A stretch of 64,000 nucleotides of DNA, taken from the NCBI GenBank assembly GCA_001949185.1, contig BDGG01000001.1:1484263-1548262 (forward strand). Direction: 5' to 3'. The first letter of the stretch is position 1. Every line of letters begins with the position of its first letter. A model generated the notes under the pieces. That model searched no databases and was not told where the DNA came from. It saw nothing but the letters and a program-made list of their open reading frames with translations. The position numbers were made by a program, and so were the translations under genes. This document shows positions 22,479 through 34,359 of this stretch, piece after piece. This DNA comes from Ramazzottius varieornatus. Its lineage: Eukaryota; Animalia; Tardigrada.

Positions 22479-25400
22479 ATGCCACCAAAGAAGACGAAAC
22501 CTGCGAATCCAGCCAAGACCGCTTCGAAAGATGGCTCATCAGCCAACGCCGATGGTCCATCCGGCAGCATTTCGAGTCGACTTGCGCAGAACCCATTACC
22601 CACTATCGATGTTACGCCCTCCGCTGTCTCACCTGTGGATGTCCTACCCACGGCCACCAAACCACACAAAAATCTAGCTGCCGATGTTGATCCAGTTCCG
22701 ACTATTATCCCACAACGAGATCAGATACCCCGGAGTATCCACTTTGTGCCAGTTGTGGACGAAAATATTGTACCTCAAAACATACCCCGTTTTGCCGACG
22801 AAAAACCTTCCATCGATCAGACAAAATTGCGCCATCATGATATCGCCGTCAAAAAGTATCCTTTCCGCCACGAGCAAATCGACCACCATCTAGATCAAAC
22901 TCGTCGCGTCCACCATGCTGACTTCGCTGTCCCGCAGAAGGTATTCAACGCCTCCAAGAGCGACGAAAGCATCACTTTTGAAGAGGCTGTATTACCCACA
23001 GAAAATTTCCACGCTGAGCGTCCGTCGGTGGGTCAAGCTGACCACCATGACCACATCGAATCCGAAGTCGACAAGATGGATGAAAGAACCCAAGAACTAC
23101 TCGAAAATACCAGCCTGACTTCAGTCTATCCCACCGATATGAAATCCGACTTAACGTTAGACGAGGTTCCTGTGTCGCTATTGGACGAAAATAAGGTGGA
23201 CGATAGGGCCTGGGAAGTATCAGGTTTCATCAATGATCGAAAGGACGTCAAAGTTTTCTTCGAAAATTTTATCTTCAATCCGGACACGTACCCATCGAGC
23301 TATCCGCTTTTGCAAACCAACATCGCCAAGAGGAAGAAACGGTTTACCATTGCGGAACCACCGTTCTGGCAGATGGTGCCACCCGAGCTGACAGAAACAC
23401 CTACGCCCAGTCACTCAAATCGCCATCATGGTAAGGGCCTGTAGGTGTCGTGGGTCTAGCTCGCAATGAATGACCTTATCTAGTGTAGCATAAGGGACCC
23501 ATCGTAGAAAAAAACAGTTCTTTCAGAACTGTTAGTGTGGAAATTTATGGTAGGTAATGTTTGAGTTCTGCGAACTGCAGTTGAAACTTCGTTTGACGCA
23601 AAATCCGCCGAACAGTTACCGGGTTGAAAAACAGATAGAGTATCTGAGTCGTGGCGGCCCAGTTGTGTAACAATGGTTCTGTTTTCCAAAGCACTCTTTT
23701 TTTGACATGAGGGTCAAGCATGTCGAAGGGCATCGCATGGTGAGCTTGCCGTACCTCGCCGTGGCTCGAAGTCTCAAAAAACGTTTCCCCCTTTTTAGAA
23801 GATTTTCCCGAAAATTCACCAGCTGAGATACCCTCACTTGAGCGGTTTTGCGTCCGAACAGATGTAGCCGCATTCCCACGCTGTATGATGTCACCGTGAC
23901 GTCGAAAAATTTTCATTCAACATTTCGAGCCTCTTCAAATTTTTCTGACGTAGCCGCTTGACCACTGGTCAGGAGGCCGAATGAACTCGAGCATCGTTTT
24001 CGCCGATGCCTGTTACATCTGACTGCCTCAGTAGTTCAACTTTGGGCTTGGGGTCCCAAAACTTAAATGTCAATTCGTGAACACTTCCTGAACAAAAACC
24101 CATCGTTACAAAACTGGGTTGCCAGTACCCATTTGTATGGAATGAATACCGGATACCTTTTGAATCTTTAAAACTAGATATCCGTCAAATTCGCTGTAGG
24201 GAAGACTGGATCGTCTCCTGCTGCCTTATCCCCCGCCGATGCTAAGAATGCGAAGAAAGGAAAATCGCCGGTTACGGTGGTCGAACCAGATCGGGATTCT
24301 CCTACTGACAATGACCAGCAGGAAAAACCGATAAGAGAAGAAAAGAAAGGCGGGAAGAAACAGGGACAGCGGGTCTCAGCCTCGGATGGCGCACCAAGTT
24401 CAATGTTGAAACCCGGAGAACTGACACCGCTGAAAAATGTTCTAAAGGGTGTGGAACGACCACAGACCGGTGGTAGCCGGTTTGACCTGAAGGCGGTGGC
24501 TAGTACCATGAACAAGCCATCCTCCATTGCTGAACCGGCGAAAGCGCCAGAGATCGGTCAACCACCTGTTGCGGAAGCAATCAAAGAGCGGTCGTCTTGG
24601 GAAGCATTCTTCGGGGAAAGTGAGAAATTGATCGACGAAGCTTTCGATCCCAACGAAGCGGGAACAGGATATGACACGGTGCACGGACCTACCGGTCTAA
24701 GGTAAAAGCAGTTCCCTGCTTAGTTTCCTTTGGCTTTCTTCAAAACTTTTCGTAAGATTTTTTGATCGCGAGGTAAAGGCTGTAAACTTAGCCGACCCAT
24801 ACCAGGTTTATAAAGTTAGCCCCAGCTGTTTCGTCTATCGCTTGATTGACCATTTGAGTGGCAGTCTTAGATTTTTAACATGGGACTTCAACGTTTCTTT
24901 AATTGCGGATCTCTTGAATTCTCTGAATCCTCACGTTGACTTTACCCAATACCATTCGACAGCCCATTATTGTACCTATCGCTCTATCCATAAACGTTTG
25001 GAATTAAGTAGAGAACAGGCGAACTTGGAAGGCTAACTTCACAAACCCGGTGTGTGGCGGCTATCTTTGAAACCTCTCCCTCGTATATCAAGTAATATTG
25101 ACTTTTTGCAGATATCATACAGTAGGTTTAATTGTAAATTTACAGTTACTCAAAATAAATCTTCTACGTTTGATCGTACTTCAAAACATTTGTAAAGTAC
25201 GTTGTACATCGAACCGTGGATATAAACAAGTTTGTCGGCTCGTCATCGTCGCTTTTGACCTTTCCTTTGTGTCGCAGGAAACAGTTTCTGGAAGATGAAA
25301 GAACCAGCGGATTTTTCAAGAAGCTTCTCGACGAACTGGTCACGGAGTGGCTGCACCACAGATCCTCGCTGGATGCCTCCACCCAAAATGAGGGAAGAGG

Positions 25401-25895
25401 CGATGAACGTCTCCACCCTAGCCTGCAAGACGCCCTCTCTGTAATTCGAAAGAAGAAGAAAGACTCAGGAAACTGGAGTCAGCAGGTCTTCCGCGGCGCA
25501 GCTGATGCGTATGTGGAGAGGTTAGAAGGTCTCCAGAAGGTAACTTGAAGGTACATCGATCCCACGTCTTACTCTTAGCCTAACCAGATACTGTACTCTC
25601 GGAGGCCCGAGGGTAAGAATAGCTTAATGAATCTTGAATCACCCGATGTTCTAGGTTGCCTATCCGCAATACGATCGTGGACCACGGCAATGCACAGTTC
25701 CGATTCCCAACCTGACATACGATAAGTTCGACGGAGTTAAAGCAGTGCTGCGTCGAGAGTTCTCCTACAGCACGAAGGAACCGTTCATGAAGACCTACGA
25801 GTCTCAGCTGTACCCCAACCAAGACCCCGGTCGGAAAACGTTTGTAGTCGGTCGCGAAGTCTTACGCTACTACGCTCCGATGACTTCGGCGAAAG
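22479..25895 (+). CDS. Orphan multi-exon protein; exons 22479-23430, 23527-23549, 24178-24701, 25278-25539, 25655-25895 (3' end uncertain, possibly 26823-26848)
   Basis: MPPKK start; GT-AG sites with compatible phases link the listed ORFs; no domain recognised. Confidence 0.6.
23740..23790 (-). repeat. Dispersed repeat family copy (intronic)
   Basis: The reverse complement ttttgagacttcgagccacggcgaggtacggc matches 6255-6288. Confidence 0.65.
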
Positions 25896-26939
25896 GTTGG
25901 TGGTTCAGTTTGCCATGCACTCATATGTCCGTTTGGTTGTTTGGACTAATTATCGAAGTATGCCAAAAACCTGGAAACTCAGTTTGAATTGTTGTACAGA
26001 AATACATAGAAGTACAATAAGTTTTAACGCTTCGTTCACCAGAAATTCTGTGGTCGTTCGATCTCGGCAAATTTTGCATTAAAGTGAAGCAATTCGTGGG
26101 CAATACTGCAAAATTAGAGCCTAGGTTGAAAAGGCATTCGGGGCAAAAAATTTGTGAAGTATAGGAAGCGAAGTTTTTTCAGGGCTCCGCGTTCACGAAA
26201 TTTTGTAGTTTCTCCCCATTGCACGTTTGAGTCTGACTTTAGCTTTGGATGAAAGAGCGATGTCTAGTGATTAGTTTGGACAGAAGGAAGTCAAGCCGGA
26301 CCGCTGTCAACGCTAGAGGAAAAATTCATTTCTGCACCAAGTGGAAATGCGCAAGTGAAATGGGGAACAACGAGCTGGTGCCTTACCTGATCACCAGCCG
26401 GATATTGGTAACTTTTCCGTTTTCTTCGCCGCGTTTCATTCCTGATGGTAGTTTGTTTTCATTCTGTATTCCCTTTACACTCTAGTTGCTTTTGTCGAAG
26501 CGCTAAGAAACCATCTACAGTATCTCAGATATTCAAAAAACTGCATCTTTCACGATCGGCGCGGGAATAACACCACGAAGTGGGCGAGTTTACGAGGAAA
26601 ATCGAAAAACGACTTATTGCATCTTTTCAAAAAATTATTTCTCCTTCTGTGCGAGTGTCAGGTACCTCATCTTTTAAGGACGGTGGTTACAGGAGATGGT
26701 CTATCTGTTGAAAGCGTGTTGTGGCATAAAGCATTGTCAGGTGTCCTGTGCCTTAAAACTTATCGAACCCCTGTGTACTTTCTCGAGTTGATATTGGTAT
26801 TCGCTTTCTTTTTTGCTTTTAGCAACTATCCGTCATTATCCTGATTAGCTGGTAAAGATCTCGCAACGTCGGAACACACGTGTTCGTCTACAGTAATTTC
26901 CTCTGGAATACAGTGTAAATTCCATCGCGATAATACTTC

Positions 26940-29900
26940 ATGTTCTACCTTCCAGATATCGACTACGATCCACGGAATATGCCTTGCGGAGGCTCGTACC
27001 TTCCCGAGCACTACCTGACCCCCTCTGAGGTAAAGACCTGCAACCCAGTCATCACCGACATGATACCCAAGAAAGAAGCCGACCTCACCATACAAATGAA
27101 ACTCCGGTCTGTCCGTCGCCAAGAACCCACACCACGTCCCAAGCCCGTCCACTCCACCCTTCAGTTCCCCAAGCCGAACAAGCCCCGTCTTCCACGCTCT
27201 TACTACAACGCAAAAGGGTCCCCATGCTCACTGTTCGTTGTTCGTCGACTTAACCCAAACTATTGGCCCGAGCGCATGCTACCACCTGTTCGCCCTGACG
27301 CGGTCCGACCACGCTGCCTCCAGTCCACCAAGACATGGTCCATCTATGTGGCCATTCAACGCAGATTACTTCGGCAAGTGCACGAACGTGCCAGACGGAG
27401 AGAAGAAACACGAAGACAGTTTCACTTAGAAAGATCATGCTACTGTCGACAAGGAAGGCCGAACTACCAGCCAAAGTTCTCGCCGAAGAAGAAGCAGAAG
27501 GTTACACGAAATCAAGTAAAGATGCGCTGGAGTAAACTAGTTTTGAATCACAGCTTTACTGGAGTGTATTGTCCGAGGTTACAGCCACCTATTCTGTCCC
27601 CTCCAAAGTATCAACATTTCGGCGGTAACTTTGACGTTCCCGAAACTGTAATGGAACAAGGATACAAGAATCCGTTGTGGACCACCCTCCGCGAAAAAAA
27701 AGCTTCTGCCGAACAAGGCGTAAGAAAAGATGCAGAAGAGAAAGAAGTCGCAGTCAAGAAGGAGAAACTCTCGGAAGTTATTCAGAACGCGGCAGCAACG
27801 TCTCAGCAAGTCTCTACCGCGTTTCTGGTTCATCCAACGAGTACTGTAGGAGCTCCGCATGGAAAACAATCGGCCAAGCCAAGGCAACTTGTTTCGTCTT
27901 CTGCAAGAGGAAACAAACATGAAGTAGGGAAAACAAATATCCCTGTACGGGGGATGAACCCTCAAGTTCAGGACCTCGGCGATCAGGATGATGCTTCAGT
28001 TCACCCTATACCAACGGCTTTGATGGTCGAAGAAGATGGCATATCGCTTGTCATACCCGACAAGGCAACAGCTAGGAGGCAGACTGGAGACAAAACCAGT
28101 AAAACCAAACCAGGTAGGATGCAAAGGGAGTTCCCGCTGTTGGGAAAGACGTGACAATTGATCCGATGTGAAACCAAGAATTCGAAGTGGCAAGCGGGTA
28201 TTCCATTAACTTGCTACGACAGCTAGGTTGTATGTATGCCTAGACTTCAGCTGTCTCATCTTTCTAGACGAAGAAAACCGCACTGCCGAGCGGTCGGACA
28301 AAGCTTTACCACTCGTTCCCCGATCATCGCCGCGCACTCAGAGTCCCGAGCGAAGTCAAATGCTGAACACCGACAATAAGACAGCTTCCTACCTCATGCC
28401 GACCAACTCTCTCCTGCTCCCTGGGCCTGCACCTGAAAACAACATGAACATCGATCACCTCAGTAAATACACCTTTGCGGATGTTCCGCCAGATACCCGG
28501 TACTCGTTGTTAAATGCACCAGGCGGGATCGACCAGCTTGTCGGTTACACCAGAGATGAAATCCTACATGCCGCAGTCAAAGACCAATCAAAACAACCTC
28601 CCTCTTCCAAACCGGCCCAGCCTCCATTGATTGAAGTTGTGTCTTCAAGTATTCTTTCTGTGCAAAACGATAACAAGCTACGCTGTTCGAATAGCTGGGA
28701 CACCCAAGAAGGAAGAAATGTTGGAGAGAGAATTGCCGAGCAAGAAAACAAAGCAGCTGAAGCACGGGATGCTCGGGCTTACATCCCGCCGTTTCAACCA
28801 AGGTACATGATGGGTAAACAATATCGTGAGTCGAAAAAGAAGGTCATAACACCGAGACGGGCGTCCGATAAGATGGAGGGCGATCCGCAAAGAGTGATCA
28901 GGTTGCGAGAGCGAGAGAGATTGCGGAGTGGCGATGGAAAGTCCATGTCACCACTCGATCTGCTGTTCGAACAAGCAGCCCGTCGAAGCAGTAATGCTGA
29001 TGCTGATAGTGGAGAAGAGAGAGAAAAAATCGGATCAGTTCCGATTCAATGTGACATTCGGCTCAACGATGAGAATACGCCACTTAACCATTATGTTACT
29101 TTTGAAGGACGACCAATACCACGTAAGCGTCTGCCAGTAAGCCATACCATAAATTATCATTGTTCTGCGAAATTTACAGACTATTGAGATTACTTTGTGA
29201 ACTTCGTTCTAGAGAGTATCAAAGGTGGTCATGCCCATCCTCGTCAACAGCGCAGCTTGATCTATTTCGACCGTCCTAATACAGGGTGATTCTGATTGCT
29301 GCGAACGATTTTGAAAATCTACCACAAATTCACCGACAGTGATATTATTCTAGTAATTTGGGGCTTGAAAGCCCTTGGCCTTATGAATCGCTAGAACACG
29401 GGCAGGCCAAGAATCGAGAGATTTCTGGAACATCTCAAGAGGAATTTTCTTGTACTCCTCCTGTGCGGCTCTTATCATGCCCTTCTCGGTGGTGTAGTTC
29501 CGTTGCGCGAGTCGCTGTTTCAGGTAGCCGTTCGCAAAGAAATCCATCGGCGACACATCCGGGCTGTTTGCCAACCATTCTTCCTTCGTAATAACTTTGA
29601 TCCCTCGGGATCTGAGCCATGCGATGACTTTCTTTGCGGTATGAGCTGGAGCACTGTCCATGTGAAGGATCACCTTCTAAGCATCAGCTCGATACAATTT
29701 TGGCACATCAATATCGAACATTGGCTTGAGAATCTTTTTGATGAAAAGATCGGCATTGACTTTGGCTTTCTGGGGGACAGCGTAAAGTCGAGTTGAACCA
29801 CGGTAGGAATAGCCAGCAGCGAACATACGTTGGGCCGGAAATGAGGAAGATTTTACTGCAGTCGGGATCACTCGACCATCTTCAACATTTTTTTTCGTCA

Positions 29901-32900
29901 CGTAGACGAAATCGGTCTTTCCGTTCTTGAAGTCCAGCGGTAGCATCGTCCATCGTAAAAATATACTCGAGGTTCTCTGAAATTATGTTGTGGAAATTCA
30001 GGGCACCATCTTTTCGTTGTTTGATGGCTTTCTGAGACAGGAAATGCACTTTGGGCTTCTTGCGGATGGTGGCACCTAAATCTTCGTGGATGATGCGGTG
30101 AATCGTGTGCTGGGAGACCCCTATCTTCTTTGCCATCCGTCTTTGTGGGATACTGTTGTCCTTCGAGCAGAGCTCAGCGACTTTCTTGATTTTCGTCGGT
30201 GTTCTGATAAGCGGTGGTCCGGTTTTCTTCTTCTGTATCTTTGCAGGGCAATTTTTGCTGGAGTCGCTTCCGACGCTTTTCCATACCTTCGATACCGTAG
30301 ACTTCACCACAGTGTACCCTTCCTTCGTCAGTTTCTTTATAGTCATGCTTATACTGTAATTAAGTCTTCTGAGGGCCAAGATACGGACCCTGATGCCTCA
30401 GAGATTGGAGGAGGCATGATCAAGTTTTCGGAAAAAGCAAAACGATCAAAAAAAGCCCACAAAATTTTCTATCAGCTGATTTACTCGGCAATCAAATTGG
30501 TTGATTACCCATTTTACTGTTCGAGTTCAAAATCGTTCGCAGCAATCAGAATCACCCTGTACTAGCAAGGAGAGACCTGCAAGACGAAAGTCGACTAGAA
30601 AGCCAGCGACAAGATATGAAACCACCAGGCAGCGAGAACGCTTTTGTGAGCCTGGAGGCTTATTAGCTGCTGGTGACAGACTGCGCTTGGCTCCTGAGAA
30701 TCCCGAAGTGACGCAAGCTACCACGAAATTGGTGAGGGAGATGGGTCCGATGGAAAAGTCTACCGTCAAAACAGTACCGCGAAGAGCCGCGGAACGGCAG
30801 ATAACCAGAAAGCAGTTCGAAGCGAAAACTGCCAATGGCGATCCTGACAAGAAGAGCTCGTGGATAAAGATGGATCCGCACCTCAACATCAAGAACTACG
30901 CGATCATGAGACATAACGCCATGAAGTATACACACCGCAATGAAGAGGTAAGGAGGCCGAAGAACTTGTTTGTCCTTCACGACAACTTCTGGAAGCAAAA
31001 GGCACCTTTCGTGGTCGCATTAAGCAGCAAACCAAGCCGGAAAATGTTGCCCCATTTGCGACAGTACCTACTTCAGAAGCAGGAAGAAAATAAGAAGCTT
31101 TCGCAAGTACAGATGATCCTCAAAGACTTCAAACTAGTTGACAGTCTCTATGGACCAGTTGTACTGACTTTGAAAGCCCAAGCGGATGCTGAGATGGAAT
31201 TCCGGACACCTAACAAAGTCGAGAAAGTGCCTGATTTCATTTCGAAAGTATTGCTTCATCATAGACTGAAGCGTCTGAACTTATTCCTGCCGAACGCAGG
31301 AAAAGTATCGCTGGAATTTTCCGACGAAGATCTGATCGAAGGACCATCTCGAAGAAAGCCTATGAAGTGGTACGATTACCTGACATTGTCGAACGCGAGC
31401 TTCCTCAAGCAAACGCGTCCGCAAGCTGCCTTGAGTTCTCGCCTTGAAGAACGACGAGCTCGACTTCACGCAAAACGTCTTGTTCGCCGGTACACAGGAG
31501 AATACCACCACACTCATCTTGTTCGTTCCATCCTGAAATCAAAAGTCCTGCCTTCGACAGCCGACCCTAACGCTTCGAATCTAGATGCTCACGTCAACGT
31601 TCCGCTTTCTTCCGAATCACAAGACGATCATCCGGAGGATGAAGTGCTGGTAAGAGTGGCTGCACAAACCCCAAAAGGGAAGTCTCCAAACGCAACGAAG
31701 AGTGGAAAGAACAAGAACGCATTGGACGTCGAGTCGGAGTCACTTCTGAGTGACGACATTGACGACCCGTCAGTTAAAGGCAGGAGCAGAGTTAACATGA
31801 AACGGGAAAGTGGTCAAAATATCCGAGGGGCCGGGCTTGTCACGAAGGACAAAGGAAAGACTCGGGGTTCGTCAGCCGCTACGTCCCACAAACCAATCAA
31901 CGAACACCCGAAAGTACCAGCGGCTTACGCAGACGGCAAAACGGCAGAGTCTGGTGACGAGCATCCTAAAATGAAAACCGGTAATCGGGCAAGCGCTTCT
32001 GATGACGGTCAACGGGACAAACCAGGTCCCGAGGAATGGCCGCCTTGGTGGCATTTCGACGTTTCAGAAGGTTTCTCCGATCAAGTGAAGAACAGTGACC
32101 AGCGGCCAAATCCGAGGACCGACCTCTTCGAGTCTCAAATGCGTCTTGCAGATAGGCGTGGGTTCATTCCAGCGGCGGATAAACTTGATTTCAAACACAA
32201 AGCCCACCTGACGTTCCAAGAGAAGTCACTGTTAGACTTTGTCAGTTTATTAAAAGAGAAATATGATCGTACGGACGCCAAGACTAAACGAGATCGTACA
32301 TCAACTGCTGACGCCAAAGCGACAGACACTCAAGAAAGGATATTACATCCGAACAGTTTTTTGGTCGGTTCCTTCCCAGAGGAAATTCAGCACATCGTCA
32401 AAAGGTTTCAAGACATCGCAACAGGTAGACTTCCAGATGACACGATTGCTAAGCCTCAAGCAGAGGAAACTCACAAGGACAGTGGAGAGACGAAAAACTC
32501 CCTGGAGCAAAAGTTTAGTCTGATTGGCGAGAATTCAGACTTTACTTCGATCGACACACTAAACAGTGAGGAAGATTCGGCAGCGGAGGACGAGAACTTG
32601 CGGATAAGCTGCGAAGTTCGAATAGACCCGGAAGATTATTCGTGGCAGCTTCCACAGATTGCCGACATGAGAAGGAAGGTTGCAGCCCGATGCAAGTATT
32701 ACGACAGATGTACTGACTACCTTCACAGCCTGAAACCGCTTAGTGAAGATCAGGCGTTGTCAAACAAACTCAGGCAGATGAACTTGTGGACGGATAATCC
32801 AGCAGGTACATACTATATTTATTTCCTCAACCTTCACGCTTCTCAGCGTACGAAGCAGTATAGGACAGAAAAACATTTCGTTGTATTCCTTTGATTGTTT

Positions 32901-33464
32901 TTTTGCTTAGAAGCAACATTTTCGGAGCTACCACGGCAAGGTCAAATGCGTAATTTAGCACTACGGATCGACGAACTTGCTTTTACGACTTGCTCGACAA
33001 GCACCGAAACCATCGAAAACCGTATCACAGGCCTGGTTCTTCAGCTTCAACTGGCAAAGTTGCACGTTGCTCACTTGGCTGATGAGGCAATCGATAAAGC
33101 GCAGCGAGTTCATAACCATGAAGCAGCCATGAGGCGGTATGCAAAGGTAACGGGCTACAGCACTGATAGTCCTTCGATATGTCACGCTCTGCACAACATG
33201 CCATTACTACGGACACCGCCAGCCAGTCCGCCGCGGTGCCCCAGTCCTTCCAAGCTCGCCCAAGATACGGGTGTCGATGTAACAAATGAAGAAGATGGTA
33301 AAGATAAAAAAAGCAAGGGGGAGAAGAACGCCGACAAGAACAAAAAGGGCAAAGATGTGAAGGCGAACAGGAGCGATGATAAGAAGCCTCGGTTTGGCTC
33401 AGATAATGCCAAACCGCCGACGAAGAAAAACTCAGCAAACTCCAAACACGGTCCGAGTAAATAA
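26940..33464 (+). CDS. Large orphan basic/disordered protein (~1630 aa); exons 26940-28113, 28268-29122, 29213-[transposon]-32805, 32911-33464
   Basis: The 404-, 319-, 797- and 189-aa ORFs join in frame through three phase-1 GT-AG introns. Removing the transposon plus one TA restores ...FDRPN-TSKERPARRK... Confidence 0.75.
29282..30559 (-). mobile_element. Tc1/mariner superfamily, DD37D (maT) transposon, 1278 bp, with perfect 34-bp TIRs and TA target duplication
   Basis: TIR cagggtgattctgattgctgcgaacgattttgaa at 29282-29315, inverted at 30526-30559. TA at 29280-81 and 30560-61. Transposase motifs IFTMD, HMDSAPAH, NSPDVSPMD, with 37 residues between the 2nd and 3rd Asp. Confidence 0.95.
29350..30417 (-). 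pseudogene. Inactivated maT transposase (two frameshifts, one nonsense codon)
   Basis: ATG at 30417 (MPPPISEA) is out of frame with RILALRRLNYS; frameshift at ~29947 right after IFTMD; in-frame TAG at 29677-29679. The HTH region (IPQRRMAKKIGVSQHTIHRIIHEDLG) is recognisable. Confidence 0.88.
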
Positions 33465-34359
33465 TTTTGGAGGTTCTGATGACGTTTCTCGAATTCAAAT
33501 TCGAAAGTATCGGTTTTTCCCTTCCAATATCGTCGGTAAGCTTTTCTCGCTTTAGAGGGCAACCCATAGGTCCCATACTCATGATGTTGATCTCCTATGA
33601 CATTGGTAATTGTTGTTCGCTGCTCATATACACCTTGAGTGCGCCAACTTGCTACCACCTTGTATTTCGGCGCGGAAAACTTCAGACTGCTAGCTTGCCA
33701 TTCACGCCTCCACACTTTCCGTACAACTTTCAAAGTTGCTTCGACAGAGGTATGATGCTTTTTGTTCTATTGAGAAATAGTTTGAAAAAGTTGACTAATA
33801 CACCTTCCGGTGGGGAAGACGTACCGCAGTAGGGTCAAACGCAGTGTGCAAAATTCCAGGTTGGAGTTTTCATCCTCAACCTGACATAAACAAACTCACA
33901 TCCCCGTTAGTGCACAGAAAAAATGAAGAAAGAGCAGGAAAGTTCCGAACTAACTCGACAACAGAATTAAAAACCGCCAACCTCTTGCGTTTTGTTGGGA
34001 AACTTCCTCTGATGGAGCAATTTCTAGATCTTTTTCAAAACATCAGATTCGTGTTCACCACCCACTTTCCTGTAGCTGAGTTTCATTTCTAACTATCTCC
34101 AGCAACAGCTTCTGTAGGACGACAGCAGAGAACGGCGTAAAATTTTGCGAAAGATGTTGTAATTTTCACTTCGCGCCTCCTCTAGTTTAATTCTGATTCC
34201 AACTTTTTGCAAACAGATTTTTGACCATTAATGTTTGGAGAGGTAGAATCAAGGAAAATTGATCTCAAAGCCGAGCAACAATCGCATCGAGAAAAACTTA
34301 ACATGATAGGTGGCGGCAAGTTGGCGCACTCAGGCTATACTTTGATGTGGGTGTATTTT

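Follow-up and report, generated by a model that had tools for sequence, protein, structure and literature searches.

When a DNA transposon comes to lie within a coding exon, is the gene broken or has it gained an intron? This question is raised by a maT-type element in the tardigrade Ramazzottius varieornatus, located in a stretch of 64,000 nucleotides that was analysed as a whole (hereafter the window; contig BDGG01000001.1 of assembly GCA_001949185.1, forward-strand positions 1,484,263 to 1,548,262, position 1 of the window being its first letter). The element interrupts a coding exon of the orthologue of Hypsibius exemplaris BV898_10584. The rest of this gene is intact, the sequenced DNA carries the element as a single fixed copy, and RNA from the locus reads through it. 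The original prediction had proposed that the element could be spliced out as a frame-preserving new intron, with the caveat that a copy which was dead beforehand might just as well have knocked out the gene very recently. With the intact ends, the lesions private to this copy and the open frame of the host gene taken together, it is the caveat that now ranks first: a recent disruptive hop of an already dead maT-type copy, read through in RNA, is the explanation that we favour with slightly better than even confidence.

A maT-type element within a coding exon

As read directly from the sequence, window positions 29282-30559 are occupied by a Tc1/mariner element of 1,278 bp with its transposase on the minus strand, flanked by a TA target-site duplication at 29280..29281 on the left and at 30560..30561 on the right. 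The terminal inverted repeats (29282-29315 and 30526-30559) are complementary at 34 of 34 nt. The inverted repeat at the element reaches 45 nt at 93%, longer than these 34-nt ends because the target itself is partly palindromic; the target of the window copy (29271-29281 / 30560-30570) forms a partial palindrome of 20 nt. Read-through into the left terminal repeat meets an in-frame TGA at 29287-89, the immediate stop that had been predicted, and the same repeat contains the proposed splice donor GT (29286-87). Two competing AGs in the right terminal repeat, with ends at 30542 and 30549, lie out of frame. The host sequence directly after the right TA is CTAG (30562..30565, plus strand), the AG of which, at 30564-65, is the proposed acceptor.

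The transposase remnant (29350..30417, minus strand; ATG at 30417-15, stop codon at 29352-50) is open in three pieces, and part of it is publicly annotated as RvY_00518. Its breaks were placed by comparison with an intact relative of 357 aa, RvY_15055, and amount to exactly the three lesions that had been counted before: a 1-nt deletion between 30396 and 30395, a 5-nt deletion between 29947 and 29946, and a change of TGG to TAG at 29679-29677. A direct count in the open reading frame piece of the window gave 37 residues between two catalytic aspartates (HMD...(37)...PMD). RvY_15055 aligned to the catalytic domain of Sleeping Beauty (5cr4) with an E value of 8e-4, and weakly to Mos1; compared with this DD34E enzyme, its second and third catalytic positions lie 3 residues further apart, and an Asp stands opposite the Glu. 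The count of 37 residues and the Asp at the third position therefore make up the DD37D signature of maT. Thus named in the original prediction, the element is supported as a maT-type DD37D Tc1/mariner transposon by its spacing, TA and ends. Database relatives of the transposase showed 47-58% identity, and no Pfam transposase model scored above threshold.

RvY_15055 is encoded at L004:1623-2693 (G000:C11:964710-965998) as an intact DD37D transposase within an element that has kept both ends. This element, which is possibly autonomous, shows 72% DNA identity to the window copy, and the two agree in the CAGGGTG at the termini and in the inner GAACGATTTTGAAC of their ends.

In the assembly of 55.8 Mb in 200 contigs, the family of the window element comprises three copies with five to six recognisable ends, and one of the three copies sits in a gene exon. 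The two siblings are 94.0% (C2) and 92.2% (C7) identical to the window copy, damaged at their ends and broken by nested insertions. The C2 sibling has been hit by a 383-bp miniature inverted-repeat transposable element (MITE) with inverted ends of about 45 nt (L002:1118-1500). The other sibling was hit by an element of 481 bp whose ends start with AGTCCTCCTCACGAC (L008:1842-2322), and a gap of about 16 kb lies between its halves (G000:C7:1396865-1412836).

The host gene was modelled on the plus strand with eight exons and seven GT-AG introns; the joined model was used for the frame count and for one comparison with the orthologue, and database searches were run exon by exon. The exons upstream are 22479-23430, 24200-24701, 25278-25539, 25655-25895, 26956-28113 and 28268-29122. 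The interrupted exon consists of a 5' part (29213..29281), which encodes the conserved HPRQQRSLI, and a 3' part (30562..32805), and is followed, after an intron of 105 nt, by the last exon with the stop codon (32911..33464). The modelled introns are 23431-24199, 24702-25277, 25540-25654, 25896-26955, 28114-28267, 29123-29212 and 32806-32910. When the element is removed, either as an empty site or as the proposed intron, a single open frame of 2,278 codons results; when it is kept, the frame ends at codon 1349 with the TGA in the left end. After the element 747 + 184 = 931 codons are open (30564-32805 and 32911-33461), in agreement with the about 930 given earlier. Thus, the element is the sole lesion of the host gene.

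The closest outside relative of the host protein is BV898_10584 of H. exemplaris (2,419 aa). In tblastn searches it was colinear with window 22479-33452 on both sides of the element, and in a pairwise comparison the 2,278-codon model aligned with it over nearly the full length. The motif HPR(L/Q)QRSLI, located five codons 5' of the insertion, was found in 4/4 related proteins. The conserved motif and the colinear orthologue therefore place the insertion in true coding sequence, and it is by the orthologues that the predicted exon status was borne out. Pfam gave no match for the pieces of the host gene. Fragment proteins across the junction were looked for with the 180 codons that follow the element as the query, which had no hit.

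In the public annotation, one gene of 2,278 codons (22479-33464) appears to be split around the transposon. RvY_00519 (GAU87708.1) represents the 3' half of the host gene and starts inside the interrupted exon, with Met at 30741, while RvY_00518 (215 aa) models the transposase remnant and bridges the 5-nt deletion via an invented intron. A public model for the 5' half was not retrieved; orthologue residues 480-1420, used as the query, matched only the orthologue.

The proposed splice and the RNA of the locus

Removing 29286-30565 takes out 1,280 nt, i.e. the element together with one TA, and keeps the frame. The empty site encodes P-N-T-S-K and the proposed junction P-N-T-G-K, the exchange of Ser for Gly being the sole change; in this respect the arithmetic of the original prediction was confirmed in full. 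With the GT at positions 5-6 of the element, the removal is frame-neutral only if an AG stands at host positions +3/+4 after the TA, for which the chance is 1 in 16. The prediction had been restricted to one orientation of the element. This restriction is not needed, because the ends are perfect inverted copies, so that the GT and the right-end sequence are identical in either orientation.

The proposed donor reads AGG/GTGATT, with the slash at the exon border, and the proposed acceptor is CACCCTGTACTAG. Among the modelled introns of the host gene, donor position +3 is A in 6/7, and the acceptors are pyrimidine-rich and end with TAG in 4/7. Placed beside these seven introns, the proposed sites look usable, though not strong.

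Contigs of four sequencing runs were compared with window positions 28100-33500. X1 is DNA, X4 and X6 were called RNA by guess, and X5 is of unspecified kind; all of these are contigs, in which rare variants may be hidden. In X1, the flanks ran into the element ends at a depth of 22-23, copy-specific contigs had a depth of 22-26, and loose ends matched the flanks belonging to the two sibling copies. No empty-site joint was present in the X1 contigs, within the limit just stated for rare variants. The equal depth and the lack of an empty-site joint therefore indicate one fixed copy and no empty allele. A heterozygous or rare allele, and with it the empty allele considered in the original prediction, found no support, as the flanking DNA contigs enter the element ends at flank depth.

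The X4 and X6 contigs span the element at 100% identity, colinear with the genome. At 19 sites where X1 has sibling letters, X4 and X6 showed the letters of the window copy only, whereas X1 had the sibling letter alone at 7 of these 19 sites. The exclusive presence of window-copy letters therefore points to RNA from the locus and not to genomic DNA, and carry-over of genomic DNA into X4 and X6 was ruled out by the same 19 sites. An X5 contig (30526-31410) extends from the right end through the proposed acceptor into the exon, unspliced.

The predicted splice joint (29285-30566) was found in none of the contigs of the four runs, a comparison of low power given that the same contigs keep ordinary introns. 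Introns 5, 6 and 7 (28114-28267, 29123-29212 and 32806-32910) were retained in RNA-like contigs of three runs at a depth as low as that of the exons, and one X6 contig (28100-28451) and two X4 contigs (28869-29142 and 32776-33073) ran unbroken across exon borders. Because three ordinary introns are kept in these contigs, the RNA data are also compatible with the predicted splice. The sampled material is therefore unspliced RNA that contains the element, and processed mRNA of the host gene was not detected. That only unspliced RNA is present may be due, among other causes, to decay of a message with a stop codon in it, to noise or antisense transcription, or to expression restricted to certain stages.

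Age of the insertion and rival explanations

The three transposase lesions are found in the window copy alone, as are 33 substitutions (2.6%), and 0 changes fall in the 68 nt of its ends. Had the copy stayed at this site throughout, the chance of unchanged ends would be about 0.2. At the same rate, about 19 lesions would be expected in a dead host coding sequence of 6.8 kb, and 0 were seen; an old knock-out was ruled out on these numbers, because the host frame is fully open. If the hop was recent, perfect ends are required rather than fortunate.

The sequence of events would then be as follows. An old, dead maT-type transposon with intact ends was probably mobilised in trans, for which RvY_15055 is a candidate source of transposase, and would have inserted into a TA within a long coding exon of the BV898_10584 orthologue, a conserved tardigrade gene, to become fixed in the sequenced laboratory strain. 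As RNA from the locus runs on through the element, translation would stop at the left-end TGA (codon 1349 of 2,278), and the function of the gene would presumably be lost. That GT and AG form a frame-neutral pair would be due to chance, the CAGG/GT terminus having met a partly palindromic CT-NN-TA-NN-AG target. The public annotation, which splits the locus, counts for such a disruption.

Several points weigh against a recent disruptive hop. There is no near-identical maT copy in the genome (siblings 92-94%, related MITEs 79-90%), so that nothing independent points to recent transposition and the donor copy is no longer there. Since near-identical copies showing recent activity are missing, an explanation by splicing and selection stays alive. 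Under disruption, moreover, a GT..AG pair that is exactly frame-neutral would be expected in only about 1/16 of cases. The RNA-like contigs, in which introns 5, 6 and 7 are kept, are silent on mature mRNA.

Best surviving among the alternatives, although unlikely in our view, is a new tolerated intron: the spliceosome would join the left-end GT at 29286 to the host AG at 30565, and a full-length protein with Gly instead of Ser would be made. The arithmetic is exact and the 2,278-codon gene is otherwise open throughout; however, no joint was seen in the four runs, and the RNA-like contigs are colinear through the element and the acceptor, so that the predicted occurrence of the splice was not borne out. 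If the 2.6% private change and the three lesions arose in place, the open host frame would be explained only by selection, and a fresh hop is not made likely by any sign of recent transposon activity, but the perfect ends favour a recent hop. AGG/GTGATT and the acceptor (7 pyrimidines in the ten bases before TAG) come near the modelled introns, yet the donor has G at +3, where 6/7 of these introns have A, and no G at +5, and the out-of-frame AGs ending at 30542 and 30549 precede the proposed acceptor. The element ends would, in addition, pair in RNA as a 36-bp stem that buries the donor.

We regard it as quite unlikely that the element is partly removed by other cryptic splicing, as with Tc1 in Caenorhabditis elegans mutants, for example from GT 29286 to the AG at 30542 or 30549, or at internal sites; the messages would then be truncated or shifted out of frame, and largely or wholly without function. 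The right end has three AGs within 25 nt, the first two of which follow the better context TCGTTCGCAG, but a joint of any kind was absent from the contigs, with the same weak power as stated above.

Gene fission, by which the 5' part would end at the left-end TGA and the 3' part would have its transcript start in or close to the element and its translation start at Met 30741, is highly improbable: although the layout of the public annotation matches, both halves are open and the X5 contig begins in the right end and enters the 3' half, the annotation is the response of a predictor to a stop codon and no evidence, a break of the assembly graph in the repeated end accounts for the start of the contig at 30526, the RNA-like coverage is continuous across the locus with no separate units, and the 60 codons from the element to Met 30741 are still open and in frame.

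Target preference and comparison with known systems

CT-NN precedes the TA at 4/6 ends of the three-copy family, for which a chance of about 2e-4 was computed post hoc. The window copy lies in CTAA-TA-CTAG and the C2 copy in CTCA-TA-TAAG (L002 near 835-842 and 2509-2520). The three-copy family may thus have a symmetric target preference, with which the AG would be present even if splicing had not been selected for. Genome-wide, 88 ends belong to a related family with TACAGGGTGATCCC ends (e.g. C3:3042880-3043631 and C7:1979806-1980552), which includes MITEs of about 740 bp that are 79-90% alike; these are old elements, non-autonomous and derived from the same group of transposons. Among the ends of this related family, CT-NN before TA, the mirror of TA-NN-AG, was found at 1/30, compared with 1.9 expected, hence no excess. 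Thus, the enrichment for TANNAG targets suggested by the original prediction did not emerge in the related family, where the count is at chance level, and the introner-like family that it had envisaged comes down to three copies. That the element represents a new and exactly frame-neutral spliceosomal intron, with the GT of either end serving as donor and the AG coming from a palindromic CT-NN-TA-NN-AG target that the subfamily may prefer, seems to us a doubtful proposition and rather improbable; any hop into such a target would then leave the length unchanged, whichever way the element lies.

A separate mariner-like MITE of 345 bp is located 40 kb upstream (L021:492-837; G000:C1:1471291-1471636) and has the ends TA-CGAGGTAAACGTCACAATTCGGGC. 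It reads TA-CGAG/GTAAAC...TA-G, and with the G after the second TA a GT..AG pair exists here too. It resembles the window element in lying on the same contig, in its TA target and in a GT at element positions 5-6 (TA-CGAG/GT vs TA-CAGG/GT). It differs in its unrelated end sequence, which assigns it to a different family, and in its acceptor, which would be composed of TA and G and give a net gain of 3 nt. Kinship of the window element with this MITE was ruled out by the unrelated ends.

If the predicted junction is not used, the locus is an ordinary gene disruption fixed in the strain, and the sequenced strain may be a natural null for the BV898_10584 orthologue. Of practical value is that the public annotation splits this orthologue into the models RvY_00518 and RvY_00519. 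If the junction is used, the locus would be a rare animal case of a full-length DNA transposon serving as a frame-neutral intron, in which the ancestral state, the element and the gene can all be read. Were the new intron real, R. varieornatus would, together with the 345-bp MITE, be an animal in which Tc1/mariner ends turn into introns.

Exonic insertions of Tc1, Ds and dSpm give rise to cryptic and mostly imprecise splicing. Rushforth and Anderson reportedly observed in 1996 that Tc1 insertions are removed, mostly imprecisely, from the pre-mRNAs of Caenorhabditis elegans mutants. The window copy is like C. elegans Tc1 in being an exonic Tc1/mariner element with GT and AG in or beside its ends as possible cryptic sites. 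In C. elegans the removal could be demonstrated at the RNA level, mostly as an imprecise one, whereas spliced RNA was not seen here and the proposed removal would keep the length exactly.

Introners are said to have been described by Huff and co-workers in 2016 as DNA-transposon families that generate introns. They are intron-generating transposon families with many similar copies sitting as introns, and many of these families have target-site duplications and terminal inverted repeats (PMC9860276, Gozashti et al. 2022). In a full-text search, tardigrades and introners turned up together in a single paper, the subject of which is Copia retrotransposons. Introners, like the proposed intron, take one splice site from the element, and the other arises in or beside the target duplication. 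Unlike the window family, with three copies, one of them exonic, and no target bias in the related family, introners are mostly short non-autonomous copies in many genes. Many copies sitting as introns in unrelated genes were not found for the window family, and an introner-like population is absent.

The element adds to a known transposon group. It differs from other members of the maT (DD37D) family in that the window copy is dead, is part of a subfamily of three copies and leaves Pfam models below their thresholds. It shares with this family the TA duplication, inverted ends of about 34 nt, a size near 1.3 kb, one transposase, which in the intact relative has about 357 aa, and the spacing of 37 residues.

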